Shown piece by piece: positions 11,230 to 62,253 of a stretch of DNA of 64,000 nt. Position 1 is the stretch's first letter. Each line of letters opens with the position of its first letter. A program made the translations under genes and the position numbers. The notes beneath the pieces were generated by a model. It was not told the origin of the DNA and made no database searches. It saw nothing but the letters and a program-made list of their open reading frames with translations. Origin of the DNA: Lepidodermella squamata (lineage: Eukaryota > Animalia > Gastrotricha); the NCBI GenBank assembly GCA_047495785.1, contig JBLDXI010000012.1, forward strand, positions 1,054,001-1,118,000, given 5' to 3'.

Positions 11230-13287
11230 AACGTTGTCAGACCCGTAAGCGCCGAAAGCGTGACCTATCTATTACAGATAGAATGCTAAATTTATTTCAG
11301 TTCAGCGGCAGTAATTCGATGGCGCTCATTGCAAACATCCAAAGGTAAGTCACACGGATTAAATTTACTACGATTTTGTAATAACGCACCAAATTGGCTG
11401 GCTCGTGCCGAACTAAGACGAACTTTTCGATGGTCATGCCTTAGATTTAATTTCTCGGCCGTTATCTTTTAGTCAGAAACCGCGGCCTTTCGACAATTCG
11501 CGTGGCTATTCTGCCGAATGCGTGGACTTCATCATGTCACTCATTGACAACCGTCCAACAATCGATCAAGCACTTGATCATCATTTCTTGGCTAAACCGC
11601 CAACAACCGAAGAAGAAGCCATCAAGGTATATGTACTATCATCTAAAAATTGTAAGATATGCCTACTTTGCCTAATAATTTAAATGCTTTTTAAAGGAAT
11701 TCGTACGATGCGGATGTGAAAATGACGCAGCGAGAATGTCCCGACTGCTGTTATGCTGTGACCCTTATCTGGGTGTGGATGTCAACGGCAAATACTGGGA
11801 AAACGAAGAAACTGCACTTCATTATGCAGCGAAGGAAGGCAATGTCAAAATTATTCAACTTCTGGCCGATAACTTCGAAGCCGATGTCAACGCGGCTGAC
11901 AAAGATGGCTGGACACCATTGCACTGCGCGGGCAAAAATGGCTATGCTGACGTCGTGGAACTACTAGCTGGCAGGTTCAACGCTGACGTCAATGCGGAAA
12001 ATAACGAGGGAAAGACGCCATTGCACTATGCCGCGAAATACGGCAAAGATGACGTTGTGAAGCTCCTGGCGGGCAGGTTCAATGCCGACGTCAACGTAAC
12101 TGATAAGGATGGCTGGACGCCATTGCTCTATGCCGTCAAATGTGGCAAATCAGAAGTCGTGGAACTGCTGGCTGGCAGGTTCAAAGCTGACATCAACACG
12201 ACCGATAAGGATGGCTTGACACCAATGCATTATGCCGTCAAATGTGGCAAAGCAGCAATCGTTGGAATGCTGGCGCGCAGGTTTACAGACCAAGTCAACG
12301 CGGCTGATAAAGATGGCTGCACGCCACTGCACTATGCCGTCAAATATGTCGAGGCAGAAATCGTGGAACTGCTGGCTGCCAGGTTCAACGCCGACGTCAA
12401 CGCGGTAAACAACGAGGGCAAGACGCCATTGCACTATGCCGCCCAGAATGGCCATGTCGACGTTATCGTGGCACTGCTGGCGCGTAACTTCAAAGCCGAC
12501 GTAAATGCAGCTGATAAAGATGGCTGGACACCACTGCACTATGCCGTCCAGAATCCTTACTATACCGGCGTTGTGGAACTGCTGGCTGGCAGGTTCAAAG
12601 CCAACGCCAACGCGGCTGATAAAAATGGTTGCACGCCACTGCATTATGCCGCCCAGATTGGCGATGCTGAATTCGCGAAATTGCTGGTGTTCACATTCAA
12701 AGCCGACGTCAACGCGGTGGATGAAAACGGTGATACACCGCTGATGAGGGCTGCTTATTTTACACAACCTTATATTGTTTTTTATCTTGTCAATGTTCTC
12801 AAAGCCGAACCAAACTTGAAAAACAAGAATGGAAAAACTGCCCTTGATTTGGCTAAAACGCCTCATTACGATGAACGGAAAAATTCTGAACAACAGCGAC
12901 GAATCGTTGAAACTCTCTCAAAATCCACCTCTACTCCTGTCAAAAAACGCTTGCTTTCATGGCTTGTAAAGAAGTTTGGTAAGTAAGGGTCGGACAGCAT
13001 GTTCCCATCAAATCTATTTTCCGTTAATCTTCGATCTTTCATGAGTTATCTATTGAGAGATCCGAGTGATCATGACGTTATGTCCTGTTCTTAGCGTCCT
13101 GCGGTTCTGAAGTACTTTGCATAAATCAAGCTATTTTCATTGCAAGCATTGTTAGTATACATGTAAATAAATGTGTTTTGTTTGTGTTTTGTTGTCGCGT
13201 TGCGGTGTTTTTAAATGCCAGGGTTCGATTCCTCATGTATGTGTCGCCGCGTTTTATGGAATTCGACGTTATGGAATTTCTTGGCGG

Positions 13288-18657: not shown

Positions 18658-20224
18658 ATGAGCGTCATGGTGTCCGTGCCACATGTTCAGCTCGATTCGA
18701 TGGTTCACGCGACGAATCATCCGAGCAGCGCGGCGTCCAGCGTCGACAACCGGTCGAACACGAGCGGCGACGATTGCCGTGATTTGACTTCAGGCCCGCA
18801 GTCTTCAATCGACGGCGCCGACGTCGAAGAAGCGGCGCAGCGGCTGATGATGATAGCCGGCGTCAAATACGAGAGCGACCTGCCGAACACGCCCAACAAC
18901 TCGTCCGATGACCGCTTTCCCATGCCTTATCGCAGCCGGAAAGGCGTTACCGTCAACCAGTACGGCCGCTCGTTCACCAACGGCCGGCCTCTTCCCGATG
19001 AACTGCGCAACAAAATTCTCGACATGGCGATGGAGGGCGTTCGGCCTTGCGAAATTTCTCGACAACTCCAGATTTCTCACGGCTGTAAGTTATTCAAACA
19101 ATTATTTTTATTTAAAATATTAATTTTTGTTAATTCAGGCGTCTCGAAAATTTTAAATCGGTACCGAAAAACCGGCACAATTAACCCTGGCCAAATTGGC
19201 GGTAGCAAGCCGAAAGTCACGACGCCTGACGTGGTGGCGCAAGTTCGTGAGTACAAGGCGCTGTCGCCGTCGATTTACGCGTGGGAAATCAAAACTCGCC
19301 TGATTCGCGACGGCATTTGCACGGAAGAAAGCGTGCCAAGCATCAGCTCAATCAACCGCATTATTCGCGACAAGTTCAGCCCGTCGGAGGCTGGCGGTGG
19401 CGGCTCGTCGTCGTCGTGCGGCTCGCGAAATGGCATGCACGGCGAAAATGACCTGTTGGACGAGCAGAATTTGAGTAATTACCCAGACGAAATGTCGCGA
19501 TCGGTCACTCCTAGTCAACTCAACGGAAAGTCGACCGGTGCTGTGCTCAATGGCTCAATGGCTTCGAATCTCCTCGTATCACCTAATCTGGTCGCACGCC
19601 GCCAATCGATGCCCGTCAAACTGCAACCGAGAGACGATTACGACGAAGAATTTAACGATGCTGGTAAGTACGATGACCTAGATTTTATGATGACCTACTT
19701 TCGAGCAATATTAAAAACTCCACCTTAAACGTATTTTTTCTTAATTTTCAAGAATAGCTATTAAAAACAGAAAAAGTCCACCTTAAAAATATTTTATTTT
19801 CATTGATAATCATTTTTTTTTTAATTTTTTTTCAGCTCTCAACTTGTCTGTGAAACGGAAATACTCTGCCGATGAATCATCGTCGCCGTCGTCGCCCAAC
19901 GGTGCGAGTGCGGCGAAAATTCAACGGCGCGCGCCTGCTAAATCTGGTCAGTCGGCGGCGGCAGGGCATCAGCCGCTTGATTTAAGCCGCGCCGAACTAA
20001 TGCCGACCCAGCAACTACCACCCGCCACTAAGCCATCGTCTCAAAAATCAGCCAAAGTGCGCGTCGGTCAGCTCGATTTGCTGGGCCAGCGATTTCAAAT
20101 GACGCGCCTCGTCGACGGCGAGAATGACGAGGTTTGGAAGCTGACAAACGTCGACGACTTCCTGACTGCGTTCCGCGCCATCCTCCTCGGCAGCGCTGCT
20201 CTGCCTCTGTTAGCTCACCGGTAA
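18658..20224 (+). CDS. Paired-box transcription factor (paired domain, no homeodomain), Pax-beta-like
   Basis: [15 protein letters not shown]...[12 protein letters not shown]...[10 protein letters not shown]...[11 protein letters not shown]. Introns at 19085-19138 and 19664-19835. C-terminal PLDLS motif. Confidence 0.93.
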
Positions 20225-28159: not shown

Positions 28160-31100
28160 ATGATCAAAGTTATTTCTAAGAAGCAGTATCGTAAGACGAA
28201 AAGGGGACAATGCTTATTTTTCTCTCGGAAATCTTACTTGCGGTCCGATATTCCATGCGGTGTAGCATTATGCAATTCATGTTGCTCACCTGCTGGCGAG
28301 CTTCCAGCAATCTTCTCCGCTGCTAATCCGCCTGTGAAATCATCTGCTATCAATGGCGATTACATTTTGATCCCGGATGTTGCAACAACCAACTTACAGG
28401 TAATCAACCTATTTCCTCTTTATTCCTTGATGTTGATATGTAGTCAATTTTCGTCAAATAGATAGATCTTTTGCGCGATGCCGCTATAACAAATGTTGTT
28501 CTGCTTCAATCTGTTTTGCAAGAAGTTGGCCGGAAAAATATGAAATCCCATGGTACCTTACGAGATTTGGCTCATGATGAGAACAAACACTTTTATGTTT
28601 TCTCCAATGAATTTCACTGGTAAGATTTTGATAAGACGCGAAGGGCTTTCTTACGTTGATCTTACGTTGGCTTCATTTAGCGAATGCTTTGATGAACCAG
28701 TCGATGGGGAATCTGTTTCTCAATACCAACAAAGGCTTGTTCTTAAAGCTGCGGAATGGTACGGTCAACACATTAAGAAAGCTAAAGGAAACAATTTCAA
28801 TGTCGTTTTGCTGACTGACGATGATAAACTGCGGGAAAAAGCATCAGCTACGAGTATAGTCACGATGTCTGTTGAGGAGTTCGTTGCTACTCTTCCGGAA
28901 GAGCTTTGCCTTATTGACAAAGTCGTAAAACTAGCAAACGTGGAAGCATTTTCTGATGCTAACTTCGCGCCTCATCTCTCATTGTCGGAGATTCAGAGTG
29001 GACTGAAATCTGGAAAGTTATTTGAAGGGACTTTTTTCCAGAGCCGATTCAACGGCACTGAGGGTACTGTTAGAGTGCACAGCACCGACCAGTCAGTTCT
29101 CATTCGGGGCATCAGAAATATTAATCGTGCCCTTCAGGACGACACCGTCGCGATCGAAATGCTCCCAAAAGAAGAGTGGGCAAAGGAATCTAATCTAGTC
29201 GCTCTATCTGAAGATCAGGAAGCCGCCGATGACGCTACTGTGCCGGATGAACCCCATCTTCTAGAAGAGGATGATGTCGAGCAAATCAAAAAGTTGAAAC
29301 CGGAAAGTCCGCAAAGAAAATCGGAGGAAGACGCACAGCCAACTGGCAAAATAGTTGGAATTATCCGCCGGAAATTCAGACAATATTGCGGAGTTCTTCA
29401 GCCATCTCAGCTACCCGGAGCTAATTTCCATCTATTCATCCCGGTCGAAAGAAGACTGCCCAAAATCCGTATTGAAACTCGCCAAGCTGACAGACTGGCT
29501 GGAAAACGAATTGTTGTCGCCATTGACCGTTGGCTTCCGACATCGCGCTATCCTACTGTGAGAAAATTCACTCGAACATCTCTTATTTAATAATATTTAT
29601 TTACAGGGCCATTTTGTCCGTTTGCTGGGCAATGCTGGGGATAAGAAAACCGAGAACGAGATGATTCTGCTCGAACGAGATGTGCCTCATGAGGGATTTT
29701 CTCAAGCTGTGTTGGAATGTCTTCCTAAGCTGCCGTGGCTTATAACGGAGAAAGACTTGCAAAATCGAGTTGATTTACGGAATTTAGATATCTGCTCCAT
29801 TGACCCTCCTGGCTGTACTGATATCGATGACGCTCTTCACTATCGCGAGTTGCCTAATGGAAATTGCGAGGTTAGCTAAGGGTAAATCTTTAAAATTCAT
29901 CTCAAGTTTGTGTCTAGGTTGGAGTCCATATTGCTGATGTATCTCATTTCATTCGACCGGGCACGGCGATTGACCGAGAAGCTGCTCATCGTGGCACGAC
30001 GGTATACCTAACAGACCAGCGCATTGACATGGTACCTGAATTGCTAAGCTCTAACCTTTGCTCTCTTCGCCAACAAGAAGACCGATTCGCGTTTTCAGCT
30101 GTTTGGGAACTGACAAAAAATGCGGATATTGTCAATACCAAGTTCCACAAATCAATTATCAAGTCAAAGGTTTGTCAATTAGTTGAATTTCGAGCTGAAG
30201 TTATAAAAATATATTCAGAATGCGTTTACTTATGGCGAAGCGCAAGCTCGAATTGACGATGCGAGCAAACAAGATTCTCTAACTTTGGGACTTCGAAAGT
30301 TATTGGCTTTGTCTAAAGTTTTGCGGAAGAAAAGAGGCGAAGCGGGTGCTTTGACGCTCGCCTCATCTGAAATTCGTTTCAATTTGGATTCGGAGACCCA
30401 CGATCCTGTGGGGGTTCAATCAAAGCAAATGCTGTAAGCTGATTTCTGAGATTAATTTTTATTTTCAAGCTGATTTTTTTTTATAGGGAAACGAACTCCC
30501 TGGTTGAGGAATTCATGCTTTTAGCGAATTGTTCCGTCGCTGACTTCATCTGGAAGCACTTTCCTGATTGTGCCGTGTTACGTCGTCATCCGATTCCGAA
30601 CACCGAGCAGTACACCGCTCTTCACGAAGCTGCTGCCTCGAAGGGTTTTCAGATAAAAACTGACGCCGGTCTGGATCTCGCGAAGTCTTTGGACGCCGCT
30701 GTTGTGCCTACTGCGCCATATTTCAATACAATGCTGCGAATGATCGCGACACGCTGCATGACCCAGGCCATTTATTTTGCCTCTGGAACATTGGCCTATG
30801 AACACTTCTTTCATTTTGGTCTTGCCGCCCCGATCTACACTCATTTCACATCGCCGATTCGTCGCTATCCGGATATTTTGGTCCACCGCCTATTAGCAGC
30901 TGCGATCGGAGTCGATACCACATATCCCGAGCTGTTGGATAAGCGGAAAATGCAGGATTGCTGCAATCACATGAATCATCGCCACCGCATGGCTCAATAC
31001 GCTTCCCGAGATTCAGTCGCCCTACACACTGTCATGTATTTCGCGAAGTCGCCTTGCGTTGAAAGCGGCTTCGTGCTCTTCGTCAAAGAAAACGCGCTTC

Positions 31101-31429
31101 AAATTCTGGTGCCGAAATATGGCTTAGAGGTCACCCTCGGTCTGAAAGACGCGAGCGGTAATAAGGTTTTCGAATTCGACAAAGAGAAGTGTTTACAACG
31201 CTCGAAAACGGGCGATGTCACGCTGAAAATGTTCGACGGTGTCAAAGTGTATTTAAGCGTGGCAACTGACGGCCCGCAGGCTGCGATGAGAAACCGCTTG
31301 ACTATCAAGCTTGTCGAGCCGAAAATTGAAGGATTTAGCGTTGAACCTCCACCGAACGTTGTTAAAAGCGAAAAGGGAGCAGCCGAGAAAGAAGCCGACG
31401 GGCCGTGCAAGCGCCCACGGAGAGCGTGA
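28160..31429 (+). CDS. DIS3: Exosome catalytic subunit Rrp44 (PIN + CSD + RNB + S1)
   Basis: [62 protein letters not shown]. Confidence 0.97.
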
Positions 31430-31663: not shown

Positions 31664-34600
31664 ATGTATGAAGCAAGTTCTGGAGAGCAGAGCAGCAAAT
31701 TTACTATCCCGCTACCTCTTCTGCCGCCTTTGGTCGAGCAGAAAATTGCCCAACTAGTTCAGAATGTTGTCTCGCGATCCAATTCCCTGGTCGGAAGTAA
31801 ATGTGTCCATGCTTTGAAGAAACAGAATAAAACGAAAAAGAGAAACGCTCAACTGAATGATCAACAATTCAGTGAAGAAGGTGAAGACGCGTTACTGTAT
31901 AACGGCAGCCTAGTAGCGACTGAATACCAATCGCTATGGCTGGCTAATCACTACCCTCAAATGCTGCGGCCCGCTAACCACTGGGACGACGAACGTCGCA
32001 CCTACGAAAAACTACTCGACATAGGCACAAATTTGTGCCGAGATAGGCAATACGAACACGCCTTGAGATGTTTCAATATGGTAATCTAAATTCTTCTTGT
32101 TCAAATTTTTCCTAATTTTGTTTTGAAGGCCGTTCCCCCAAACGCTGCAGACCATGCATATTTATACGCGTTGCGATCGCTGGTAAAACTCAGTTCGGAA
32201 ATGTACGAAGCCGCCGTGGTCGATGCCGCTACAGTTATGCTCATATTCCTGACGAACACAATGTGGCACCGGCTATTCCCTCATTTTCGCCTGGCTTTCA
32301 CTAATGCTCACCTCGTCGTGGCTGTCGCCTTTTCTCGGCTCGGCTACGTTGCTGCGGCGAAGGCGTGGGCCGATCGCTTTGTCTGCATGTCTGAATCGCT
32401 ACCTGGCCATGATGCCGAATCGATGCTAGCTGCGCTTCATCTCTCAAAGTTAGGCGACGAAGCTAGGCTGCTTCACAGCGCGAATATTTTGGAAATAGCC
32501 GATTTCGAAGCGATTCGGCAAATCAATGCCGAAGATCTGAAGTACCACGCCGAACGCGTTTTGCTTGGCGGTGAAACTCTGACTTCGGTTCAAGTTCTAT
32601 TTTCGATCGTTCATATCTCTCTAAATTACGGCTACTTTCTCACCGAGAGCATTCCATGTAAGTTGGTTTTTTTTTAATTTCCGTAGAAGCCTGACAGTTA
32701 CCAATACCACGCCAATTTTATGCCATTAGAGGCAAGATTAAATTTAGAGTCTTATTAAATACCTCCAAAATTAGTATTCCTAAATCAATAAAAGACATTC
32801 GATTTAGGAATTCTTTCAATGTTCGAAATAATTGAAATGTGGCTTATTTCGCTATCGGAAATAATCAGGTTTTATCAAGTTGCATGGCGGTATGACACAA
32901 TAATTTGTCGAGTCTTTATTCTAGTGATAACTATAAACTATTTAAGGTTCAACTTATATGTTTGTTGGATGAGCTTTCATTCGAATTTATCACACTGCTC
33001 ATACATCAACATTTGCTTGCGGTCCATTAGCCTTCAATTTTTGAAAAACCGGACTGAGAATAATGGCACCAGATGTTGACGAGATTATCAAAGAGCCGAA
33101 AGAGATCACGTACTGCTGGGTAAGATCATCGCCATTTAACACCAGCAGGATGAACATAACACCAAAACAAAGAATCGTAGCATTAGCAACTGCGGCTCTT
33201 GAGCTGCCGAATTCTGGCGATTTATTTGCCCAGTAAGATTCGCGCAAGTCGAATGCCAAGAATGCGCTAATTAAAAGCATCAATAAATGAGAAACCGGGA
33301 CAGCGATTCCTGCAAATGGCGTCTTGGATGAGCAAAAATTTGTATCAATTGATATGAATGCATCCGCGTCAGTATCATAGCGTAAGTTGGCTACTTTCGA
33401 AGCAACTGTGTACGGCTCAATAGCTAGCCAAATAACGATGCCAAAAAGGTTTAAAACCGAGAACAAACCGCAAATTGTGCAGATAAATTTATCCAGCCTT
33501 GCTTTTGAATGAATCTGAAATGAAGTAACTGGATCTTTAGACGTAGTATATCGCGATTTGACCGAAAATGTACGAGGAATTGCCGATATGCTCTCGCTTG
33601 TCCCTACAGGTAGTGATTTTTTGAGGGGCTTCGCTCTATTCCTGTATAAAATCATTCTTCCCAGAAGATAGCTAACTATTAAAGCCAGGCCGATTTGAGT
33701 ACAGACGTATCGAGCCACGCAGATTGCTGCATGGGTTGGGTTCAGGGCGTGGATTGTCCCTCCAGAATTAAGAAGGACGCATCCTAATATTAGCATGCAT
33801 TTACTGTATGGTAGAGTGTTTTTAATAGATTTAGCTTTGCGGCCGAGTAAAATCCGAATGGCTAGCCCACCAAAAATCAAGCTTATAGTTACGGATAACG
33901 CCGCAATTATGCCGAAAAACCAGTCTGGTATTTCTCGTTTTTTGTGAAAGATTGCGACTTTGTCTCTAGGAGGATGCCCATTCGAAGTCGCCCAAGTGAT
34001 GTTCCTTAGCGTTGTAATGTTATATCGCTCATATTTATATATTTCCTCGAGTAATTCGTTAGTTTTCATCACTATTAAATCGTGATTTTTCGAATCATTT
34101 ACCGACCACTGGCTTACAACTTGATACTCGAAGTCGCGTTCAAGTCGCTGGCTGTACTTAGCTCGCGGGTCGTGGAGAGCGCTGTAGACCACGAGTGGCG
34201 CTGTTTCATTAACGACTCGTGCTATGACATCGGGTTGCGTGCCATGTGACGCAAGGCTCATATTTCGTTGTCGTAGAGCTTTCTCCGAAAAATGTAGGGT
34301 TAATATAGCTTGTAGCATCGAATCATGGCAACTGTGGGCGAACCCGTAGTCCAAATCGCGCCGCTTGTTGGTCAATGCATCAAACCTTTCATCAAAGCCC
34401 TTCAAATCATAACCTAATGAGCCGATTATGTGATCGTTGAAACCTTCAATCGACCATGTTGCAGAACCTGTCCAAAATGAGATTCGTAGCTGTTCGATCA
34501 CCATTTTCCTTGTACATTCCGAATTTATGATAGCTGGCAGCGTTGTAGGGTCGAAAATCGCACTTCTTGTAAGAATGAACACATATTTTGACCCACTCAA

Positions 34601-37600
34601 ACCGTTTTTAAAACTTTGACATAAAAATCTGATCAAAGTTGGCTGCTGATTGACCTCGACGACTATAATCCGAGCGTCGCTCGATATTAGTGATTGGATC
34701 GCCGTATCCGTAAAATCCATAACTGAGTCGAACCAGGTTACTTTGATTCCTGCTAGAATAGCCTCTTGAACCAGGAGCCTTGCGATGTAGTAATCGAGTG
34801 AATTCACCGCATGCGTTATCACAGCTATTTCCTGCCATTTGCCAATTTTCTTGATGAACTGAATTCGAGCGTAGACGGCGAGTTCTCCCGGTGCTCGATT
34901 TCGGTACAAGTTTGGAAACGAATTCCTAGCAGCAGTCATCACCGGGGCTGCGCAACCGGCTGCGATAGAAATCATGTTGATGTGATGCAAAAATCGGCCA
35001 GTGCTTGTGCATCCGAATGTGATTAAATTGCCAACTGCAACCGGGGCCTGATAAGCTGTGTCATTTTCGGGGTTTTCAAATTTTCGAACAAAGTTGATGA
35101 GCTGCTTGGGTGACAGCATTCCAAGACCTTCGTCTTGAAAATCGGCCTCCAGTGTGTAATCTGGTAGTATGTCATCTCTCGAGTTGACTGCGTCGATCGC
35201 GACTTGCATAGCTGATCGGCACATGAAACCTGTTGATGGCTCGTTGCCGGTCATTAAATTGAAGGCCAGCAAAGTCAGTCGATGTTGTTTGGTAGCTGTA
35301 GCTAGAGCCGTTTCGATCGCCAAGATCAAAATGCTCACCAGCGTAAAAATTCGTGAATTCATACTTCTCGATTAATGAATTTATTTTAACGGTTAGCAGC
35401 CGGAATCGAAGCTTGAATGTGACTAGGTAAATATCACGTTTTTGCAGGCTATGATAAAAAATATTTGTGATGATATTCGCAATAAATTAGCGGGATAGAC
35501 TGAACTCGAGTCGCCTGACCAAAAAGGACATGTCTCAAAACGCACGCACCGCCCTCATAATTAATGAACCCTCATAATGACGTGGACGTTGTGTCGAGCG
35601 AGGGCTAGCTTTTACGCTAATTAGTTAGATGTTTGTCTAACCCACTTAAAGTATTCAGGTCGATAATTTGAAAAAACCTATTCTTTTGAATTTATGCGCT
35701 AATTAGTTCTCAAGCAGTGGGTGGAGAAAATTCTTAATATTCAAAGATGGTTTAGCGCTTAAATCTACTTCATTCCCAGTCAAGTCCCAGTCCCAGTGGG
35801 TTAGGGTTAGTTGTTACTTAGGGTTAGCCATAATTTTGGTCATTGGAGATGAATCGACCGGAGTTTCATCGACTTCTTAGCTAGGAAAAGCTGCCATCCC
35901 GCGATCTCAGTGGGAATGGGAATTTTTGTACTGAGACATAAAAACGAGGGGGATATGTACGATTTTCTGCCTTTTACGTGAATTTCAAGCTTGAAGAAAA
36001 CCGCACGGAATTCCCCTCTATCATGTTTCGTGATGCTAACTTTGCTCAAAACGATATCGTTTCTTCATTCTCCATTCTGTATTGCAGTTCGAGTTCGGAG
36101 AAAGCCTTAAAACAGTTGGTACCGTTTATTCAGCAATTTAAAAAAAAATTGAAAAAAATCAATAGTCAAGTTCCCATTTTTCGGTTATTCGGGTGATGAC
36201 TTCTGAGCACCTGCTCTCATTAGTCGCTCAGCAGTCAGAAAATGCCACCGCTTTCCTTTGTAATACCTGGTGAGAGCATCAGCCAGTATTTTTTGGTAGT
36301 GGGGTTTCCACTGTGTCCAAGGCTGAACCCTTGCTATCCAGATTCGGATTCACAGTGCGATTTCGTTACGCAGCTCAGCCAAAAATACACGAAATTGTTT
36401 ATGCCAGTGTAAAGTTTCTGGTCCGCCATAACACGGTAAAGTGATCGCACTCTTGGCGGAAATGGAACTAGTTCCAACTCTTGAACCTTCTTTGAAAATG
36501 AGCCAATCCGTTCGTATATGTCGATTAGTAGTTCGAGGCCGAGCACAAATTCTGAAGTTGTAATATTGCCGCTGGCTGACTTGCCTTCATCTTTTACGTT
36601 TTACGGAAGAGCTACAACAAAACCTTATAATCAACTATTTTCTATTCACATATTTGCAGATCGTGATGAAATTCTCATAAACAAATACCGCTTTCACATG
36701 GGCTTGCTGCAACTACCAATAATAGCCCGCATCCTCTCAATCAACACCGCCTTCGACCTCGCCGAACTCGACTGCCAATTTTTCTCAATCCTCCTCCGCT
36801 TCCTCCTCCTGCCCATGTGCTACTGCCTAAACCACAACGTGTGCGAAGAACTACTAACTGATGCTACCTTCGTCTCATTTCTATCAACAATCGCCGTTGA
36901 GCTGACAAACGACGATGCTGCCATTGTGCGATACAGGTCGGAGAGGCCGAGTTTCGCCCTCCTCGCCCCGGTTTTCAGCACTATCCTCTGGGCAGCGTGG
37001 CATCGAGCGCCGATGGGCAGGGGCCGTTTGCTATCCGGCGTTTCGCCGTTCAACGACATCGCCTGGCATACCGAGGTTCTACTCGAGGACCTAGGCTCGA
37101 ATGGACCGCCTAACGTCTGGCTGCGACTGCTCGAGTTCTTCGCAGTTTTCTACGAAACCTTCCAGGTAATGCCGGCTTTTAAGGCGGAGGTGCAGAAAAT
37201 GCCGGTCGAGAAGCTGGCGGCTGTTATCAACAAGCTGGCCTGGTTGTGGTCGGCCCTGTTTCAGTACTCGATCGGTGGCTGTGTCGCCGCGCGGGAGCCG
37301 ATAGCTGAATCGCTGGAGAAAGCTAGCAGTGATACTTCGCTGGTGTTTTGGTTGCTCATCGCGAAGGACGCCCACTTTTTGAACGCGATGGTCCGCAGTC
37401 ATTTTTGGGTGCACGTCGCTTCACATCTAGGTAATTTTTCCAAAAATATCCAAAATCCAAAATTCAAGTTAATTTTCTACGATTTTAAAATGTGAGCTTT
37501 CTTTTTCTCATTTTTTGGATTTATGGTTCTCTTTCCCCTAGGATGCTAAATTTAGCTAACCGTCACCCTCTTGTATGCAGAATCTTTACCATTGAGGCTC

Positions 37601-51300: not shown

Positions 51301-53531
51301 ATTTAGGTTACCTTACCCTAGTCCCTAGTACTGATATTCTAGCCCATTCTAGTGCGCAGTGTCAGAGTCCAACTACTTGTTGCTGGCTCGGTCGCGGTGG
51401 TGGGGTTGGTGGGTGTGCTTTTTTATAAATCATACTAATCAAGTGAAAGAATCGCGTGCTGCCAAGCGCCATTGATGCTATCATGTCGGCCATCAAAGCA
51501 ACAAGTAAAGTATAGTTGGACTTTGGCTCTGCAAACCTGGCCTAAGGTGCCAGTCATAGAGTAAGGCGGATACGATAAAAATTAATCGTAAGTATCAAAA
51601 AACATGTTCTATTTAGAAAATACCTTGGCAGCACTGTTTTCGTTGAAAAAGTATGTTTACTGTACAAATTCTATTGTAGCTTCTAACTGACAAATTAAAA
51701 TCGGAAAATGCTCGAAGCCCTGCTCTGATACTTCACCTGCTTTAACAATATCGTAAAATGCCAACAAGAACGTGGCTATATTTAGTACACGAGTTGAAAT
51801 ATTATAACTAGTGTGAGGCCTTATTTGTATCAACTTCAGCGGCTTTGGCTCTATTGGCCCTTATTTTTCTATTTTCTCCACCAACGCACAGAGCAGTTCT
51901 TGGGACTAATGGATCACTCGACTATGTTAACAGGAACCGTGGTGGGCCGTGAAGAAACCGTGAACAGGAACCGTAAATATAACTAGAAAAAATATGATCA
52001 TAGAAAAATCATAGATTATAGTTGATCAAGTTGGTCAACCGTATTGTTGGACACCTGTTAACAGTTAACATAGGCAAGTTAAGTGAGCTATAAGTCCCAG
52101 GAGCTATTGGCAGTGAGTTAGTCGTAGCTTCGAAAGCTTGGCAAAACATCGGTTTGAAAAAAGTTAATAATTTTTAGTTAAACTACCGGTCAATTTTAGC
52201 TAAAATGAAATTAGGAGTGGCTAATGACCTTGGCCCGGTTGAATAAGCCTGCCCTCTATGGAACCTCAAGTCTTTTGAATAAATAAGAGATTGATTATTA
52301 ATAATAATTAATAATTCTTTTTTTAAAGGAATTCGTTAGGTGCGGATATGAAAATGATGCAGCGAGAATGTCCCGACTGCTGTTACGCTGTGACCCTTAT
52401 CTGGGGCTGGATGCTAACGGCAAATACTGGGAAAACGAAGAAACTGCACTTCATTGTGCAGCGAAACAAGGCAGTGTTGAAATTATTCAACTGCTGGCGG
52501 ATGGTTTCAAAGCCGACGTCAACGCGGCTGATGAGGATGGCTGGACACCATTGCACTGTGCCGTCAAAAATGGCAAACCTGATGTCGTGGAACTGCTGGC
52601 GAACAGGTTCAAAGCTGACGTCAACGCGGAGAATAACGAGGGCAAGACGCCAATGCACTTTGCCGCCAGATATGGCAAAACTGATCTCGTGGAACTGCTG
52701 GCGGGCAGGTTCAAAGCCGACGTCAACACGGCGGATAAAGATGGCTGGACGCCATTGCACTTTGCCGCCAGATATGGCTATGCTGTCGTCGTGGAACTGC
52801 TGGCGGGCAGGTTCAAAGCCGACGTCAACACGGCGGATAAGGAGGGCGAGACGCCACTGCACTATGCCGCCATATTTGGCTATGCTGTCGTCGTGGAACT
52901 GCTGGCGGGCAGGTTCAAAGCCGACGTCAACGCGCAGAATAAGGGGGGCGAGACGCCACTGCACTCCATCCGGTGGAGCGAAGCTGACGTCATCGTGGAA
53001 CTGCTAGCGGGCAGGTTCAAAGCCGACGTCAACGTGGCTAATATAAATGGCGATACACCACTGCACCATGCCGCCCGGAGTGGCAAGGCTGACGTCGTGG
53101 AACTGCTGGCGGGCAAGTTCAAAGCCGACGTCAACGCGGAGAATAAGGAGGGCGAGACGCCACTGCTTAGTTGTATCTCACTGCACAGTGCCGCCGCGTA
53201 TGGCGAAGGTGACGCCGTTGAAATTATTAAATTGCTTGTGGGCAAGTTCAAAGCCGACGTCAACGCTGTGGATAAATCTGGCGATACACCACTGATGAGA
53301 GCTGCTTATTGTACGCAACCTGATGTTGTTGGTCTTCTTGTCTATGAATTCAAAGCCAAAGCTAACTGGAGAAACAAGGAGGGAAAAACTGCGCTTGATT
53401 TAGCTAAAAGGCCTTACTTTGATGAACGAAAAAATTCTGAAGAACAAAGAATAGTTCTTCGAATGCTTTCCTCCTTTTTTCCCATCGAAAAGCGCTTGGT
53501 TTCATGGCTTGTAAAGAAATTTGCTAATTAA
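48366..53531 (+). CDS. Ser/Thr kinase (NEK-like) + ankyrin-repeat protein, copy 2, apparently intact
   Basis: GSGGFG, AIKK, HRDIKPKN, DFG, APE, DMWSFG. Splices via the 51077-51242 exon to the ankyrin exon 52329-53531 (9 repeats). Confidence 0.85.
49459..49834. mobile_element. Intronic MITE with 44-bp perfect TIRs (CATAGAGAATAG...)
   Basis: 49459-49502 is the reverse complement of 49791-49834; absent from the equivalent intron of copy 1. Confidence 0.85.
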
Positions 53532-54918: not shown

Positions 54919-55776
54919 TTAATAAAATTTATGTAATCCATACACGTTCAATTTCCAACCTAAAACATTGGCAACCGCAAAGTACGTCTTTTTTGTGTTT
55001 TCGAGGGCCAACACCTGCCTAGCAGTTCCAACATCCCAAGTCGGGTCGTGATGAATGTATTTACCGGCGATAATTTGGCACTCAGCCATATATTTCTGCG
55101 TATTATTCGTGATATGTTCATGCCAAAATTCGTCGAGAACCAGCGTCCATGGCACAAAAATTTGACCGGGATGGCTTGCAATTAAAAATAAAAACGTCCT
55201 ATATTGCTCCTCTAGTTCTTCAATCAACGCCTTGCCGAATTTCAACCGCTTTTTTAGACTGGCTTTCTCCGCCGAAAAATCCAACCCCTTGATCAGCTGC
55301 CATAATCCGAACCAGTCTGAATGGTGAGGCCGCGAGTTGATTTTCAGCCGGAATTCCGCCTCGTCCAACTCGTACTTCCCGTGGTGTAGATAACGACCGC
55401 AAATTCTGTCGCAGTCTTGCATGTACTTATTCGTCTGTAACAGGTGAAGTCGCCATATCTCGTCGATATGCCGCGAGCTAGGCTGCTTCGATTCGTCACC
55501 AGTCGCAATAGCGTAAAGAAGCTCACGATATTCTGCGATGTAATTGAGCAATTTTTCCGAGGTCAGTTTTTTGCGAATTTCTCGCGAATAACGCTCGGTC
55601 ACCCAGTCTAAATCGAGATTTTGAATCAACGCCATTTGACGGCTCCTCGCGATCGGATATCGCCATATTGCTAAATCAGCCGATGTCGGGTTGTAGCTGT
55701 GCTTTCGATTATCCGTAAAAATTTTCATTGAAGCTTTTCGAAATTTGCTGAATAAATTATTTGAGTCGAAAGACAT
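54919..55776 (-). CDS. Intronless protein with two tandem GRDP-like (DUF1399-type) domains
   Basis: The pattern LD..., (E/Q)YR.(F/L)L, P...(I/L)DE.W..H....KY...C..I.G.Y.HH occurs twice. Start is ATG 55776 or 55728. Confidence 0.7.
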   Translation of the reverse strand: MSFDSNNLFSKFRKASMKIFTDNRKHSYNPTSADLAIWRYPIARSRQMALIQNLDLDWVTERYSREIRKKLTSEKLLNYIAEYRELLYAIATGDESKQPSSRHIDEIWRLHLLQTNKYMQDCDRICGRYLHHGKYELDEAEFRLKINSRPHHSDWFGLWQLIKGLDFSAEKASLKKRLKFGKALIEELEEQYRTFLFLIASHPGQIFVPWTLVLDEFWHEHITNNTQKYMAECQIIAGKYIHHDPTWDVGTARQVLALENTKKTYFAVANVLGWKLNVYGLHKFY

Positions 55777-56616
55777 AAAAAATAATAAGCGACTGAAGTG
55801 TTTGAGAGCTACCAATTTTTTTTAATGCGCCGCGGGGAAGAAAAAAACGCAACATCTGGATACCAAGTAAAAGGTGCCGGCGGGGTGAGTCATTCATGAC
55901 TCTTTACTGCTTAGTAGATTAATCAGACGCAAACAAGCCGCGCAGGTGTTCTTGCCTGAGGGATGAAAAAGTAGAAAATAGCTCACTCATGACGCGATGT
56001 GGGCGGAGAGCGAGCCAAGCGTGACGGGCCGCTGAAAAGGACGGAAGGTAAGTGACTGTATCTGCTGTAAGATTTCGGAAAAAGGGCCTTTATCGTCTCA
56101 TTTATCAAATTTGCACCCAGGAGAGGAACAAAACTATTCCTAATTATTAAAAATATGATCCTCAAAGGTTTTTGCTTCATGGATTTTTTATAGCTGGATT
56201 CGATGTTGTCCTAAATGATGCAAAAAAACCAAAATAAATACTTGTGGTTTCCGGCACTCGGAAGTAGGCGAATTACGATCAATTAATCAGGCTTGTGGTA
56301 CAAATGCAAAATTGTTCACATTTCATCGTCTTGATTCAAACAGCTAAATGCTAAATGCTTGAGCTCGAATATGATGTTGATGTGAGTAGAAAAGGAAATT
56401 CTGTCTGGGAACGCGACCGTTCTGGAACTTGTGCCATATTTTGACGTGTTTTTTCTTAGAATAGCCGGAAATAGCAACAACGTTCACGTGCTTGATGAAT
56501 GAACTTTGCTTTTTCGGGGCAATCTCTATAATGTGACAATGCAAAAACCTGCTGTAGTTTGCGCTCGTGATTCAATTTCCCGCGGCGCCGGCCACATAAC
56601 ACTGCCATAGAAGGAC

Positions 56617-56624
56617 TATAAAAT
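56617..56624 (+). promoter_or_regulatory. TATA box of the first sHSP gene
   Basis: TATAAATA about 110 bp upstream of the ATG; the paralogue has TATATAAG at ~60738. Confidence 0.6.
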
Positions 56625-56727
56625 AGGCCGGATTTCAAGGCTAATTCATCATCAATCATTAGCAAATTCTCAGCTTTCAAGCTTTCATTTTCGATCTTTT
56701 TCCGCTCGTGTCTAACCATCTACAAAA

Positions 56728-58327
56728 ATGGCCTGCTCTTTCGCTAACAACGCTTCGTCCGTCCTGTCGGCTGGTTTCGACGGTCTTGCTGCCAAGCTCG
56801 GCCAATACAACCAATCTGGTCTGGCTGGCATCAACGCCGCCTCGGCTGCCACTGGCTTCGGCGCCAACAGCAACGTCTTTGGTGGTGTTCTCGGCGGTAA
56901 CGTCAACAACTTGGCGGGTGCCTACAACAACGGCCTCGTCGGCGGTCAGATCAACGCCAACAACGTCGCTGCTCAGATCGGCGCCAAGATCGGCGCCCTG
57001 ATCGGCCAGGAGTACGGTGCCCAGCTGGGTGCTGCCATTGCCGGCCAGCTGAACGCCACCTTCGGAGCCCAGTGGGCCGCCCAGCTGGGAGCTGCCTACG
57101 GCGCCGAGGTCGTCGCCGAGTTGGGCGCCCAACTGGCCGTCTTCGCCGCCGCCACCGGATTCGGCGCCCAGTCGACCGCCCAACAGGGTGCCCAGTGGGG
57201 TGCTCAGGCCGGCGCCCAGTTGGCCGCTGTTCTGGCTGCCAAGCTCGGCGGACAGGCTGGTGCTGCTGGTGCCTTCTTCGCCAACAATCAGGCCATCGCC
57301 CAGATCGGCGCCGCGATCATCTCGCAAGCTGGTGCCAAGCTGGGTGCCTGCGTCGCTGCTCAGATCAACGGCGGCGCCTTCGGTGCTGGTGCCAACGTCG
57401 CTGGCAACTTCGGCGGCTTCAACGCCATCAGCAACGGTCTTTTCGGTGGCCTGAACAGCTACAACGCCGGCCTCTTCGGAGCCAACCAGATCAACAACTT
57501 CGGTGGTAACGTCAACAGCTTGGCAGGTGCCTACAACAACGGTCTCTTCGGTGGTGCCAACAACTTCTCTGGCCTCTTCGGTGGCAACGCTGCCTTCAAC
57601 GGTCAGTTCTCTGGCAACCAGCTGAACAACTTCGGAGCCAACACCTTCGGCGGCCTCTTCGGCGTTGCCAACACCTTCGCCAACCAGGCTGGTCTCTTCG
57701 GCGGCAACATCAACGGCCTCGCCAACTCGCAGACTGCCGCCGACAAGCTGTACAACATCGCCTTCCGCCCGTCCAGCCAGGCCGAGCTCTACACCCTGAC
57801 CAACCCGGTGCAGTACGTCGACAACCAGGGCAACCGCCAGCTGTTCCTCGCCTTTGAGCTCAAGGGCTTCAAGCCTGAGGAAGTCACCGTCACCCTGAAC
57901 AAGGCCGAGCGCGCCGTCGTCGTCGAGGCTGCCCACGAGGCCAAGGACGGCAAGGAGCACACCGTCGCCCGCAAGTACTCGCGCAAGTTCGTCCTGCCCG
58001 AGGTGAGCTATTCAGCCATTGATATTTCCTACTTGAAATGCTAATTTTGTCCCTTTCCAGACCCTCGCCAAGGTCGACCTGGCCAAGGTTGAGCTCAAGT
58101 CGCAGCTGAACGCCAACGGCTTCCTGACCATCGAGGCCGAGCTGCCGAAGCTGAGCGCCGAGGAGATCGCCAAGCTGCCGGTTTCGTCGTCTCAGCTGCT
58201 CACCGCCGCTGCCCTCAACAACAGCAACGTCTACGGCAACGTTTTCAGCGGCAACAGCCAGTACGGCAACAACGTCTACGGCAACATCGCCAACGCCGTC
58301 AAGCCCGTCACCGTCAAGACCGCCTAA
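56728..58327 (+). CDS. Small heat-shock (alpha-crystallin domain) protein with a long Gly/Ala/Asn/Phe-rich N-terminus, 513 aa; intron 58003-58060
   Basis: FELKGFKPEEVTV...VVEAAHE...RKYSRKFVLPE/...LKSQLNANGFLTIEA; C-terminal VKPVTV (IXI-like) motif. Confidence 0.88.
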
Positions 58328-58616
58328 ATATTGAATCTGAAAGCCTTGGAGCATATAGAAAAACTCTCAGTGGAAAGACTCATTGAAATCAATGTGATTA
58401 ATCAAGTGCGATCGAATTTTATTCAAAGATGCAATAAATCAGAACTTTTCTCTGCACTTCAACATTTTTTGGTGTCCATTTTATTAGTTCAATCGACTGC
58501 TCCATTCATTATTTTCATTCAATTTCATGATAAGCCATTGACATGCAAGCAACAACAAAAAACCGAACTGAAATCAGATCAATTCGATCATTTTCGAGTT
58601 TTTTATTTACTTTCAG

Positions 58617-58702
58617 CATATAATGTTATATAATATAATATATTATATTATTATATATTATTATTATTATATTATTATTATATTATATTATATAATATAA
58701 TG
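58617..58702. repeat. AT-only low-complexity (TAT)n microsatellite
   Basis: Directly visible. Confidence 0.9.
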
Positions 58703-58917
58703 ATATGGCCCATCAAATCCTTAAGGATAGCATTAGGATCCTGAATAATCATCTTTACTCAAATAGCCAACCTACTCAAAGACGCTAACTAATCAATCAA
58801 TCAAGCAATTAATTCATCAATTAATCTCATCAAATTATAAACTTAATAATTTATAATCCTGTGTCTCAAAGGCAATGTTATAGTTTGTATATAACACAGT
58901 ATACCAATAAAAGGTTT

Positions 58918-59633
58918 TCACTCGCAGCGCTTGGTACGTAACTTCAACGCAACAACAGCGCGATGGGTTTTGGCCAAGTGCTCGTTGCGCTCATTGGAAG
59001 CCGGAAATAGTCGGTAAATTGACGAGCGGCTGCACTTGAAACCTTTCAACTGGCACTCTTCAACACATTCATCGAGCGTAACATTGACATCAGCACCAGC
59101 GCCGTTTCGAGTAGTAGCGCGTTTCCGCTCAACAAATTTCAGGATGCAATCGACAATTGCAGGATGATGAACTTCTATCGGCTTACGGCCACGCTTGACT
59201 GATTTCGGCGGGATGTCTCCAACGGGATCGAATGATATATCGTGGAAACGATGGTAGACCTGTTGAAAAAAATAAAAATAAAAATATTACTTCACAACTT
59301 TGTGATAGTAAATAATATTAAATAATTTGAAATGAAAAAAATTTAAATTTGAATTAATTGAAACCGGAAATATTGAAATTATTAAATTTGAAATACCTCG
59401 CAATCGTTTTTTTCCAGAACATCTTGAAATAGCGGGCTCGTTACGAACGACGGCCCTGTAAGACTGTTGTTATCGAGGATGTTAGAGAAGAGCGACACCT
59501 CGGGCTTGGGCGTCGGCGGGTCGAGAATGTTAGCGAAACGCGAGTTGTCGAAGCGCGGCATCTTTTCATCGAGAATGTTGGCGAAAAGTGATGCGAAGAG
59601 AGAGTCCTTAGAAATGTGTCTTTTCTGAGGCAT
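58918..59633 (-). CDS. Two-exon unknown protein with F-x-(N/D)-(I/V)-L-(D/E) repeats and an HTH-like C-terminus (intron 59260-59396)
   Basis: In-frame splice; upstream TATA; KRGRKP followed by CSRSSIYRLFP...AKTH...VALKL. Confidence 0.6.
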
Positions 59634-60864
59634 TTTCAAAACTCGTTACAAATTTAATAGGTAGTGTTAGGTGAAAATCCTACCCGAGCATGCCATCGCC
59701 AGGTGCGCCGCTATCAAGTACTTTATATGCCATGTGGCAATCGGCATGGAAACGCGAGACTGGTCCCCTAATACGACACCTGCTGCCTCTCTACCTGTTG
59801 CTATGTGGCGGCCGCGCTTTGAAGTCACGGTAAGAGATTGGTAAGAGAGACGGTTGGAAGAGAGAAATTTTTTGTATCTTCAAATGTTGTCTGCCGTGTT
59901 CTCTGTATTCGCTGAGTGGTATGGGTGGCATCTCGTCTCTCGAATAGCTGCGAAATTACAACCAGTCATTAGTAGTATACCTCCTACTTACTGCCTATTG
60001 CATGCTACTGCATGTATCATTCTGTATCAATTTGGCGAGATATAGCGAAGATTCAGTTGTTTGACCTCGAGGTCTTCGTCGCTTTCATCTACTACGTCAA
60101 GTGCGGCTATGGGTATAGTACCTTTCGTTTGCCCTTTAGTAAGGAGTTGTGTTAATTTGCAAACTCACCAAAAATTGAAAAAATTCACGAAAAAATGAGT
60201 AACTATCGGAAAAATCAGATAAATCAGCCATCATCTCCTTTATTCTTTCGCAAAATTGTTCATTTTGTGAATTTATATTTGTGAATCATCGTAGCAAGTT
60301 CAGCAGTGTTTTAAGGTGGATTTTGCTAATAAGGACATGAGCGAGGGTTTATTTTGTTCTCATTTGTTTCACTTTTGAGGTGGACTTGTGTGCGAAGGCG
60401 AGTCGAATAAGCCGCGCTTGCAGAACAGCCCCATTGTTTTACACGCACACCATGCCTGCGGGCTACGTCTGCTGATGTAAAATAGCTCCTGAAACCGAAC
60501 GAAGTAGTACTAAGAAGTGCTATTTTAGGAAAATTTCCATTGCAGCGTTGAACTTTAAGAAAATAATTCGGAAAGTTATGCATTCGGCTGAAAAGTGTTT
60601 TTCTTTCAAATAGAAGACCATTGAATTCGAGAAAAAAATTTCAATCGCACTCGTCGCCACGCCGACGCCACGCTGTTTTCCATTGTTGCGCTAAATAAAA
60701 AATCTCACCGGCACACGACCTGCCAAGTGTTAACACCTATATAAGTGGCTGAAAATTTCATTGGAAATCATCTCTTGCTCATTTGCAATTCGCTTTCAGC
60801 AATTCACTTCTCGTTCTCGCTTTTTGCCGTCGTTTTGACTTTAAGTCTTTAAACCAACCGAAAA

Positions 60865-62253
60865 ATGGCCTGCTCGTACACCTCGATCCCCTCGACCTTC
60901 GCCGCTGCTGCTGGCTACACCAGCCCGATGAACGTCGAGAGCCTGCTCCGCAACAAGGTCGACATCTACTCACCGTCGTCTGTTGAGCGCAGCCTCATCA
61001 ACGCCGCCGTCCCGACCCCGTTCGCGGCTGCCGCTGGCATCCACAACGTCAACGCCTTCGCCTCGTCCCCGATCGCCTACAACACCTTCGCCTCGCCGAT
61101 CGAGTGCGGAGCCGAGACCGGCCGCGTCTTCGGTGCCGAGTGCGGTGCCCAGCTGGCGGCCATCGTCGCCGCCCGCCTCAACACCTTCGTCGGCCAGGAG
61201 GTGGCCGTCCGCATCGGCGCCCAGTGGGGAGCCGAGATGTGCGCCAAGCTGGGTGCCGAGCTAGCCGTCAAGCTCGTCAACGGCTGGCCGGTCGAGCAGT
61301 GCGCCCGCTGGTGCTACACCTTCGGAGCCGAGCACGGCGCCGAACTGGGTGCCATCATCGCCCAGCGCCTGGGTGCCATCTACACCGCCGAGTTCGCCGC
61401 CCGCATCGGCGCCGAGCTCTTCGCCGACGTCTGCGCCAAGCAGTGCTACGTCATCGCCGCCCGCGTCGCCGAGTCGCGCTTCGGTGCTGCCTCCAACAAC
61501 TGGAACGCCGCCCGCCTCGCCAACAACTGGACCGGCTCGTTCCCGACCACCTTCGGCTCGTTCGGTGGCATCAACTACCCGACCACCTTCGGCTCGTTCG
61601 GTGGCATCAACTACCCGACCACCTTCGGCTCGTTCGAGCGCTTCGGTGGCATCAACTTCCCGAGCACCTGGGGTCGCCCTGAGCTCTTCGGCATGAACAA
61701 CACCTGCTACAACACCGCCCCCGTCCAGAACGACAAGCTGTACAACATTGCCTTCCGCCCGTCGAGCGAGCCCGAGCTTTTCTCGATGACCCACCCCATC
61801 CGCGTCATCGACAACGAGGGCAACCGCCAACTATTCCTCGCCTTCGAAATGAAGGGCTACAAGCCTGAGGAAGTCACCGTCACCCTGAACAAGGCTGAGC
61901 GCGCTGTTGTCGTCGAAGCTGCCCATGAAATCAAGGAGGGCAAGGAGCACCACGTCGCCCGCAAGTACTCGCGCAAGTTCGTCCTGCCCGAGGTAAGAAG
62001 GCTTTTTCACCCAATCTCAAAACTTTAATGATCCTTTTTTTACTAGACTCTTGCCAAGATCGACCTGACCAAGGTTGAGCTCAAGTCGTGCCTGACCCAG
62101 GAGGGCTACCTCGTCGTCGAGTGCCCGCTCCCGAAGATGACCACCGAGGAGATCGCCAAGATGCCGTTCACCGGCTACAACGCCTCGACTGGCATCCACG
62201 CTGTCAACTGCCAGCTGAACCACGTCAAGCCCGTCACCGTCAAGACTGCCTAA
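60865..62253 (+). CDS. Second small heat-shock protein paralogue with a long N-terminus, 444 aa; intron 61993-62046
   Basis: Alpha-crystallin domain nearly identical to 56728-58327, same intron position, same VKPVTVKTA tail; 36-bp repeat (PTTFGSFGGINY) about three times. Confidence 0.88.

Follow-up and report, generated by a model that had tools for sequence, protein, structure and literature searches.

Putative giant small heat-shock proteins with a predicted Gly/Ala domain and FG-rich tracts in the gastrotrich Lepidodermella squamata

Introduction

Uncharged GLFG domains of nucleoporins are well established as cohesive, and the tardigrade CAHS proteins are a multi-copy family of helical, gel-forming proteins. 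Among small heat-shock proteins (sHSPs), those with sequestrase activity have longer N- and C-terminal extensions that are enriched in phenylalanine and drive the formation of inclusions, with aromatic residues being required (PMC9458469), and assembly of Hsp42 is promoted by intermolecular disulfides (PMC13405057). Here we analyze two neighboring sHSP genes, gene 1 and gene 2, which resemble each of these systems in part and lie at positions 56728-62253 of a 64,000-nucleotide stretch of the Lepidodermella squamata genome (GCA_047495785.1, contig JBLDXI010000012.1, positions 1,054,001 to 1,118,000), hereafter called the window.

The paper describing this genome does not mention heat-shock proteins or crystallins (PMC11660948), and the gene family to which the two genes belong, with about 40 members, has gone undescribed in a published genome. 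On balance, we lean towards reading their products as constitutive, bulk cytosolic, self-assembling sHSP derivatives of the sequestrase or gel-scaffold type that make up a lineage-specific family.

Results and discussion

Gene models and the alpha-crystallin domain

The two genes are co-oriented on the forward strand, have two exons each, and are real, spliced and transcribed. Contigs of run X1, derived from RNA of whole animals from cultures without stated stress, have both introns excised exactly (joints 58000->58059 and 61990->62045, the latter in 7 contigs). Their coverage begins in the bins of the start codons and takes in the N-terminal coding parts, with next to nothing between the genes. 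Because run X11 does cover the intergenic DNA, it represents DNA. Translation of the long N-terminal extension from the first ATG agrees with these data, as this ATG and the extension lie downstream of the predicted start site and within the RNA contigs. The parts of the two genes are as follows (pLDDT, predicted local distance difference test).

56728-58002, + strand: gene 1 exon 1 (425 aa)
56728-56961, + strand: gene 1 N-terminal head, residues 1-78, starting with MACSF; Ala/Gly/Asn-rich, predicted disordered, pLDDT 23-42
56962-57372, + strand: gene 1 Gly/Ala (GA) module, residues 79-215, four predicted helices
57373-57732, + strand: gene 1 Gly/Asn/Phe low-complexity tract, residues 216-335; uncharged, with six GLFG; pLDDT about 25, no predicted secondary structure
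57733-58002, + strand: gene 1 motif DKLYNIAFRPSS preceding the alpha-crystallin domain, and first part of this domain, running to the end of exon 1
58003-58060, + strand: gene 1 intron (58 nt, GT..AG, phase 0), within the alpha-crystallin domain; removed in X1 contigs
58061-58327, + strand: gene 1 exon 2 (88 aa and stop; 513 aa in total), which completes the alpha-crystallin domain and then encodes an Asn/Tyr/Gly-rich C-terminal extension and the terminal IXI-type PVTV (58304-58315)
60865-61992, + strand: gene 2 exon 1 (376 aa)
60865-61083, + strand: gene 2 N-terminal head, residues 1-73, starting with MACSY and containing NVESLLRNKVDIYS; common to family types B, C, D and F (see below)
61084-61473, + strand: gene 2 Cys-rich GA module, residues 74-203; predicted four-helix bundle of four 32-residue units
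61474-61734, + strand: gene 2 aromatic/Gly low-complexity tract, residues 204-290, with three PTTFGSF units
61735-61992, + strand: gene 2 alpha-crystallin domain, first part, to the end of exon 1
61993-62046, + strand: gene 2 intron (54 nt, GT..AG, phase 0); removed in X1 contigs
62047-62253, + strand: gene 2 exon 2 (68 aa and stop; 444 aa in total), which completes the alpha-crystallin domain and then encodes a short C-terminal extension and the PVTVKTA tail

The analysis was carried out exon by exon, and the Pfam scores refer to exon 1 alone. HSP20 (PF00011) matches the end of exon 1 with 26.9 bits in gene 1 and 24.7 bits in gene 2 (cut-off 20.8). In both genes the match spans profile positions 10-65 of 102 and is thus partial at the exon end, which indicates that the alpha-crystallin domain is split by the intron. 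Exon 2 of both genes supplies the remainder of the domain, including the LKS..NG.L..E..LPK strands, and the last residues of both proteins are KPVTVKTA, in which the IXI anchor takes the form V-x-V. These results bear out the original prediction, made from the letters of the window, of 513- and 444-aa proteins with one C-terminal alpha-crystallin domain and an IXI-like tail. The nearest solved chains to the exon-1 part of the domain are HSPB6, C. elegans SIP-1 and alphaA/B-type crystallins, and by inspection both arginines are present in the beta6+7 strand RKYSRKF.

Judged by its motifs and profile match, the alpha-crystallin domain is canonical, and by every criterion that could be applied to the sequence both genes are members of the sHSP family. 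Their exon-1 products are 39% identical (E 2e-79). Neither protein contains a signal-peptide-like or transmembrane-like hydrophobic stretch, in line with the predicted lack of a signal peptide. The products look like giant sHSPs of about three times the usual size and are probably cytosolic.

The Gly/Ala module

The GA module of about 130 aa had been proposed to be shared by the two proteins, and the whole-genome search supports this with 40% identity between the modules of gene 1 and gene 2 (E 2e-10). AlphaFold2, given the gene 2 module with an alignment of eight modules, predicts a folded four-helix bundle with pLDDT 85.6 and pTM (predicted template-modeling score) 0.76. The model helices span 5-31, 38-65, 70-95 and 102-129 in gene 2, and 68-108, 114-143, 147-172 and 182-215 in gene 1 (pLDDT 65-76). 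When the module is compared with itself at a shift of 64 residues, identity is 39%, and shifts of 64, 32 and multiples of 4 residues beat shuffled controls. The module therefore appears to consist of four 32-residue units on a tetrad ground pattern of G-A-polar-hydrophobic. The ratio of nonsynonymous to synonymous substitution rates (dN/dS) of the module is 0.13-0.19 within the gene 1-like type A described below, which on these alignments is purifying selection; values between paralogue types (0.6-1.6) are uninformative because codon bias suppresses dS. A transmembrane role of the module was considered and rejected, as the maximal 19-residue hydropathy is 1.3-1.5 and polar residues occur at every turn. 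Complex prediction with two copies of the module returned a score of 0.00, which is evidence neither for nor against self-association.

Searches for relatives of the module gave the following results. No Pfam family reached its threshold (Yae1_N, 13.9 bits against a cut-off of 27.5) and no Gly-zipper family matched. The term "glycine zipper", used in the original prediction, thus describes the small residues at every fourth position and does not extend to membership in a glycine-zipper family. A sequence search of the PDB gave no match. With the model as query, Foldseek against the PDB gave nothing below E 0.5, a wide VIA search gave Z 7.0 at best, to generic four-helix bundles, and an Atlas structure search gave generic bundles only; an Atlas feature search gave HSP20 only.

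A HMMER profile of eight modules run against 1.84 billion representatives yielded 25 hits at E<=1e-3 (best 4e-16). Nine of these were inspected, ranks 1-8 and 10; all are long tetrad-repeat proteins of the GAQV/AAQL/SQLD kind, and they were rejected as periodicity because they are without four looped helices or an alpha-crystallin domain. A word-indexed search of 5.8 billion proteins was blank for the gene 2 GA region and for the alpha-crystallin region, both weak negatives as the genome's own proteins seem absent there. The same search with the whole exon 1 of gene 1 gave two environmental HSP20 proteins only, with low-complexity words swamping the candidates. Two scans of Joint Genome Institute (JGI) metagenome contigs, with the GA alignment and with the exon-1 alignment, found no relatives. 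In sum, the module has no credible relative in Pfam, the PDB or the 1.84 billion HMMER-scanned representatives. On the predicted models, the GA module is a real, shared, folded orphan domain. With its tetrad, 32- and 64-residue periodicity and no relatives, such a bundle would show a folded domain arising from a four-residue repeat.

The gene 2 protein contains 12 cysteines compared to 2 in the gene 1 protein, in agreement with its earlier description as the Cys-rich form. There are 7-10 cysteines per bundle in gene 2 and its relatives of types B-D, some as CxxxC pairs on single helices, and in gene 2 they take the place of small or hydrophobic interface residues found in the Cys-poor type A. 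In the model, the gene 2 cysteines could serve internal stapling, metal binding or cross-linking. One possibility is that, in the manner of bacterial copper storage proteins, the Cys-rich bundle of gene 2 and types B-D acts as a metal-binding or redox store, with an sHSP oligomer as its carrier. Both the number and the placement of the cysteines, partly CxxxC on single helices and at the interface positions of type A, are compatible with this, and copper storage proteins occur among the non-significant Foldseek rows (E 1.9-2.5). We nevertheless regard a metal store as very improbable: these rows, at E about 2, are indistinguishable from those of other helical bundles, the best VIA Z of 7.0 is generic, sequence similarity to copper storage proteins is absent in PDB and Pfam searches, and type A and part of type F keep the domain without most of the cysteines.

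FG-rich and aromatic tracts

The 120-residue tract of gene 1 contains no charged residue until its last position and is composed of 25% G, 22% N and 13% F. It includes 15 FG (about one FG per 9 residues) and six GLFG spaced by 9-13 residues. In composition this tract is Nup98-like, and it is predicted to be disordered. The tract of gene 2 carries three PTTFGSF units encoded by a perfect 36-nt tandem repeat (61542-61636). The repeat counts noted earlier for both genes were reproduced.

Two intron-free, mRNA-like environmental contigs of about 1 kb from JGI (L044, L045) encode sHSPs of the alpha-crystallin subtype found in this lineage (P0001, P0002) with short aromatic/FG-rich N-termini and without the GA module. 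P0001 is 67% identical to an ordinary-sized sHSP of the L. squamata genome whose gene bears heat-shock elements (L041), and P0002 is 36% identical to the giant type E, which has repeats only. Given these environmental sHSPs with aromatic N-termini and no module, the aromatic tract looks older than the GA module.

An amplified family in the genome

A search of the genome with exon 1 of gene 1 gave 97 exon-level matches, and the GA module gave 39 copies, each in a frame of 327-508 codons that ends in the same alpha-crystallin domain. The family comprises about 40 genes on at least four contigs, with members clustered on three contigs (C12, C33, C29) and one member on a fourth (C74). The original prediction had singled out the two genes as a system of their own; this did not hold, as they are two members of this larger family.

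The N-termini can be sorted into six types. Type A is gene 1-like, with the GLFG/Asn tract, while type B is gene 2-like, with the Cys-rich module and many near-identical copies; types C and D are variants of B, type F has fewer glycines, and type E (L017) has GSFPSTW-type repeats only, without the GA module. In each of the 24 members examined, the intron sits at the same site and the protein terminates in PVTVKTA. The alpha-crystallin domains of the giant forms constitute a tight clade (support 100/99, median terminal branch 0.02), and most of the genome's ordinary sHSPs of 184-235 aa lie outside it; the exception is L039, a shorter member on a long branch, which groups with the giants. Identity among the N-terminal modules has dropped to 36-49%, while the alpha-crystallin domain is nearly invariant. 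No signal peptide or hydrophobic segment was found in any family member looked at. From these comparisons, a lineage-specific amplified family is the best explanation.

The last segment of exon 1 occurs in two alternative versions, HEAKDGKEHTVARKY and HDIKEGKEHQISRKY, which are common to different N-terminal types (L007, L013, L017 and L031 were compared with L015, L016 and the window genes). This mosaic suggests recombination or gene conversion among paralogues.

It could be argued that the long frames are assembly or annotation artefacts or functionless decaying repeats, since the genome was assembled from amplified DNA (PMC11660948) and the coding sequence is of low complexity. This is hardly conceivable given the exact removal of introns in RNA-derived contigs, the 39 intact copies without stops, the purifying selection on the GA module, and the conservation of gene structure and promoter.

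Promoters, transcription and codon bias

Both genes have a TATA box, as noted in the original prediction, and an ATCATC initiator-like motif 29-31 nt downstream of it.

56617-56653, + strand: gene 1 core promoter, TATAAAA at 56617-56623 and initiator-like ATCATC at 56648-56653
60738-60772, + strand: gene 2 core promoter, TATATAA at 60738-60744 and ATCATC at 60767-60772

The ATCATC motif lies 80-98 nt before the ATG (about 80 nt in gene 1), with no upstream ATG between the two in either gene. The same TATA-to-ATCATC spacing of 29-31 nt was found in most of 24 paralogues.

A CGCGTG/CACGCG motif was detected in 18 of 24 giant-sHSP promoters (types B-F), compared to 12% of random 300-bp windows, at 10-30 bp upstream of the TATA box (loci L010-L034). 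It is absent from type A promoters, including that of gene 1, except for one distant copy at -287 in L006, and it is also absent from the promoter of gene 2 (56400-56727 and 60560-60864 were looked at). Since the motif is missing in both window genes, their regulation may differ from that of most of the family.

Perfect three-unit heat-shock elements (HSEs) were found within 500 bp in none of 30 giant genes, whereas clusters of them lie at -160 to -250 in three of eight sHSP genes of ordinary size from this genome. Heat inducibility through elements that bind heat-shock factor is a typical sHSP feature, though not an obligatory one, and the giant promoters searched show no such perfect element. 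This bears on an alternative, in which the proteins are ordinary stress-induced holdases whose enlarged N-terminus merely widens client binding. Such a role would suit the canonical alpha-crystallin domain and IXI tail, and sHSP N-termini are usually client-binding and aromatic-rich (PMC9458469). The ordinary sHSP L041 and the environmental P0001 already have short FG/Gly-rich N-termini. We consider this alternative unlikely in view of giant promoters without a perfect HSE in a genome that has HSE-bearing ordinary sHSP genes, a promoter of TATA box and initiator, a codon bias more extreme than that of EF1A, some 40 copies with a nearly invariant alpha-crystallin domain, and transcripts in whole-animal RNA from cultures for which no stress is stated.

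The codon bias is seen at third positions, of which 62-64% are C and 3% A in genes 1 and 2. The corresponding values in the same genome are 49-51% C and 5% A for EF1A and 47% C and 9% A for the main actin, and other open reading frames (ORFs) of the window have 21-35% C. The extreme preference for C-ending codons reported earlier is therefore confirmed, as would be expected under selection for very high expression. Together with the promoter type, it makes high constitutive expression plausible.

Very high apparent expression, together with tandem-repeat length variation in the family, would also suit an extracellular or released hard material, such as cuticular scales, egg shell or pharyngeal lining, that is exported non-classically or deposited upon cell death and hardened by Cys and aromatic cross-links. 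The Gly/aromatic/Asn repeats and Cys-rich variants resemble structural proteins, the N-terminus of L017 consists of GSFPSTW-type repeats only, and ODF1/HSPB10 of the sperm tail is a precedent for an sHSP turned into a Cys-rich structural fibre protein. Yet the members looked at lack a signal peptide or hydrophobic segment and keep chaperone-type oligomerization motifs under strong constraint, which makes a released material improbable.

A joint from 58000 to 62045, connecting gene 1 exon 1 to gene 2 exon 2, was seen in 5 contigs of X1 and 1 of X2. Since the ends of the exons hardly differ between family members, the joint most likely stems from collapsed paralogues or a collapsed assembly graph, and we treat it as such; a read-through transcript is less likely.

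A possible self-assembling material

In the reading that we prefer, a constitutive self-assembling sHSP derivative, the alpha-crystallin dimer and the tail-to-groove contact would build multimeric particles as in other sHSPs. Each subunit would add a long cohesive FG-type tract, giving highly multivalent particles that should therefore condense into large assemblies, gels or dense phases. Such assemblies could serve in bulk as a matrix that protects or sequesters, or else as structural material; the very large eggs and the epidermis are conceivable sites. The GA bundle may act as a folded spacer or an extra packing unit, and the Cys-rich version in gene 2 could allow added redox- or metal-dependent stabilization.

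The GA domain and GLFG tract on an sHSP, in about 40 genes without HSEs, is undescribed in the literature searched. The original prediction of an undescribed chaperone-scaffold family stands insofar as no characterized family matches the full architecture of sHSP core and orphan GA domain; the formation of condensates, gels or filaments and a role in dormancy or desiccation are hypothetical.

Several points weigh against this assignment. The support consists of genes, predicted structures and RNA contigs, and composition alone is no proof of phase separation. The absence of canonical HSEs leaves room for induction by other stresses. The level of expression is deduced from codon bias and contigs, and contig depth over the alpha-crystallin part pools the paralogues and therefore gives no ranking of expression. 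Tissue, life stage and physiological role are guesses.

A bolder and less probable idea is that the proteins form an intracellular FG-type hydrogel or glass outside the nuclear pore. Here, sHSP hubs that display GLFG/aromatic tracts and carry a de novo GA domain would make a bulk phase, either protective or selective in what it lets through, within eggs or epidermis, with the paralogue types (Cys-poor GLFG, Cys-rich PTTFGSF and repeat-only) tuning its properties. If true, this would be a material described for no animal. If our preferred reading holds, the proteins unite in nature two well-studied principles of self-assembly, the sHSP oligomer and the cohesive FG repeat, and are produced in bulk by an animal of a barely studied phylum. 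They may then prove useful as a ready-made test system for the cooperation of a chaperone scaffold with an FG phase, and for an abundant protectant or structural material of gastrotrichs.

Other features of the window

An AT-rich microsatellite (58618-58701) lies just past the 3' end of gene 1, and 58667-59060 has very high depth in DNA run X11, as for a dispersed repeat. Directly upstream of gene 1, a 298-aa ORF on the opposite strand has two copies of a W..H...Y..(D/E)C...G(R/K)Y(I/L)HH motif and matches no Pfam family at E<=0.001. Further features of the window are listed below.

3063-3827, 4675-5430 and 8449-9456: ORFs near the following one, no Pfam match
5530-7827, + strand: long ORF with about 45 tandem 8-residue GTSTGPMA-type units and non-repetitive flanks, no Pfam match
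11736-12986 and 52368-53531, both + strand: paralogous intronless ankyrin-repeat genes that share their N- and C-terminal ends
18658-19728, + strand: paired-box (PAX) exon
28550-31429, + strand: DIS3-like exoribonuclease in at least two ORF pieces
32999-35362, - strand: class C G protein-coupled receptor (ANF_receptor and 7tm_3)
54919-55815, - strand: the 298-aa ORF upstream of gene 1

Comparison with known systems

The ordinary sHSPs of the same genome (L035, L036, L041 and L043, among others) have the same alpha-crystallin subtype as the giants (44-61% identity) and share with them the motifs SRP..EHYSL.NPIR, KPEE and LPE; the shorter member L039/L040 also shares the intron site. In contrast to the giants, ordinary sHSPs are 184-235 aa long and without the GA module, and some of their genes have perfect HSEs. 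The glycine-zipper and deca-GX3 motifs (Pfam Gly-zipper_YMGG/Omp/OmpA, Yae1_N) resemble the GA module in having small residues at every fourth helix position. However, they are short membrane or hairpin motifs, whereas the GA module looks soluble and has 130 residues, bundled from four 32-residue units.

ODF1/HSPB10 and the lens alpha-crystallins are sHSP-family proteins that have been recruited as bulk or structural material, and ODF1 is Cys-rich and cross-linked. They are single genes without a helical Gly/Ala domain; ODF1 has C-terminal Cys-Gly-Pro repeats instead, and the crystallins have no addition. Artemia p26 and the tardigrade CAHS proteins are comparable as abundant cytosolic protectants of dormant or desiccated stages. 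They have no sequence relation to the present proteins, for which a link to dormancy is hypothetical.

The GLFG domains of Nup98, Nup100 and Nup116 share with gene 1 an uncharged Gly/Asn/Phe tract, repeated GLFG and a composition typical of cohesive FG phases. Unlike proteins of the Nup98 type, the window proteins have no GLEBS, autoproteolytic or pore-anchoring domain (Pfam at E<=1 gives HSP20 only), and their tract is short (about 120 residues) and fused to a chaperone domain.

The yeast Hsp42 and C. elegans Hsp-16.1 and Hsp-17 sequestrases have an sHSP core, an IXI tail and a long disordered, aromatic-rich N-terminal extension responsible for sequestration into large assemblies (PMC9458469), and sequestration by Hsp42 involves a prion-like segment and disulfides (PMC9458469; PMC13405057). 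An extension of this kind on an sHSP with an IXI-type tail is also present in the window proteins. The present family differs from the sequestrases in its extension of 290-335 residues with a folded four-helix domain and a GLFG-type tract, in its some 40 copies without HSEs, and in having no sequence relation to them outside the alpha-crystallin domain. By analogy of architecture, the giant sHSPs of Lepidodermella squamata would work most like sequestrases of the Hsp42 type.

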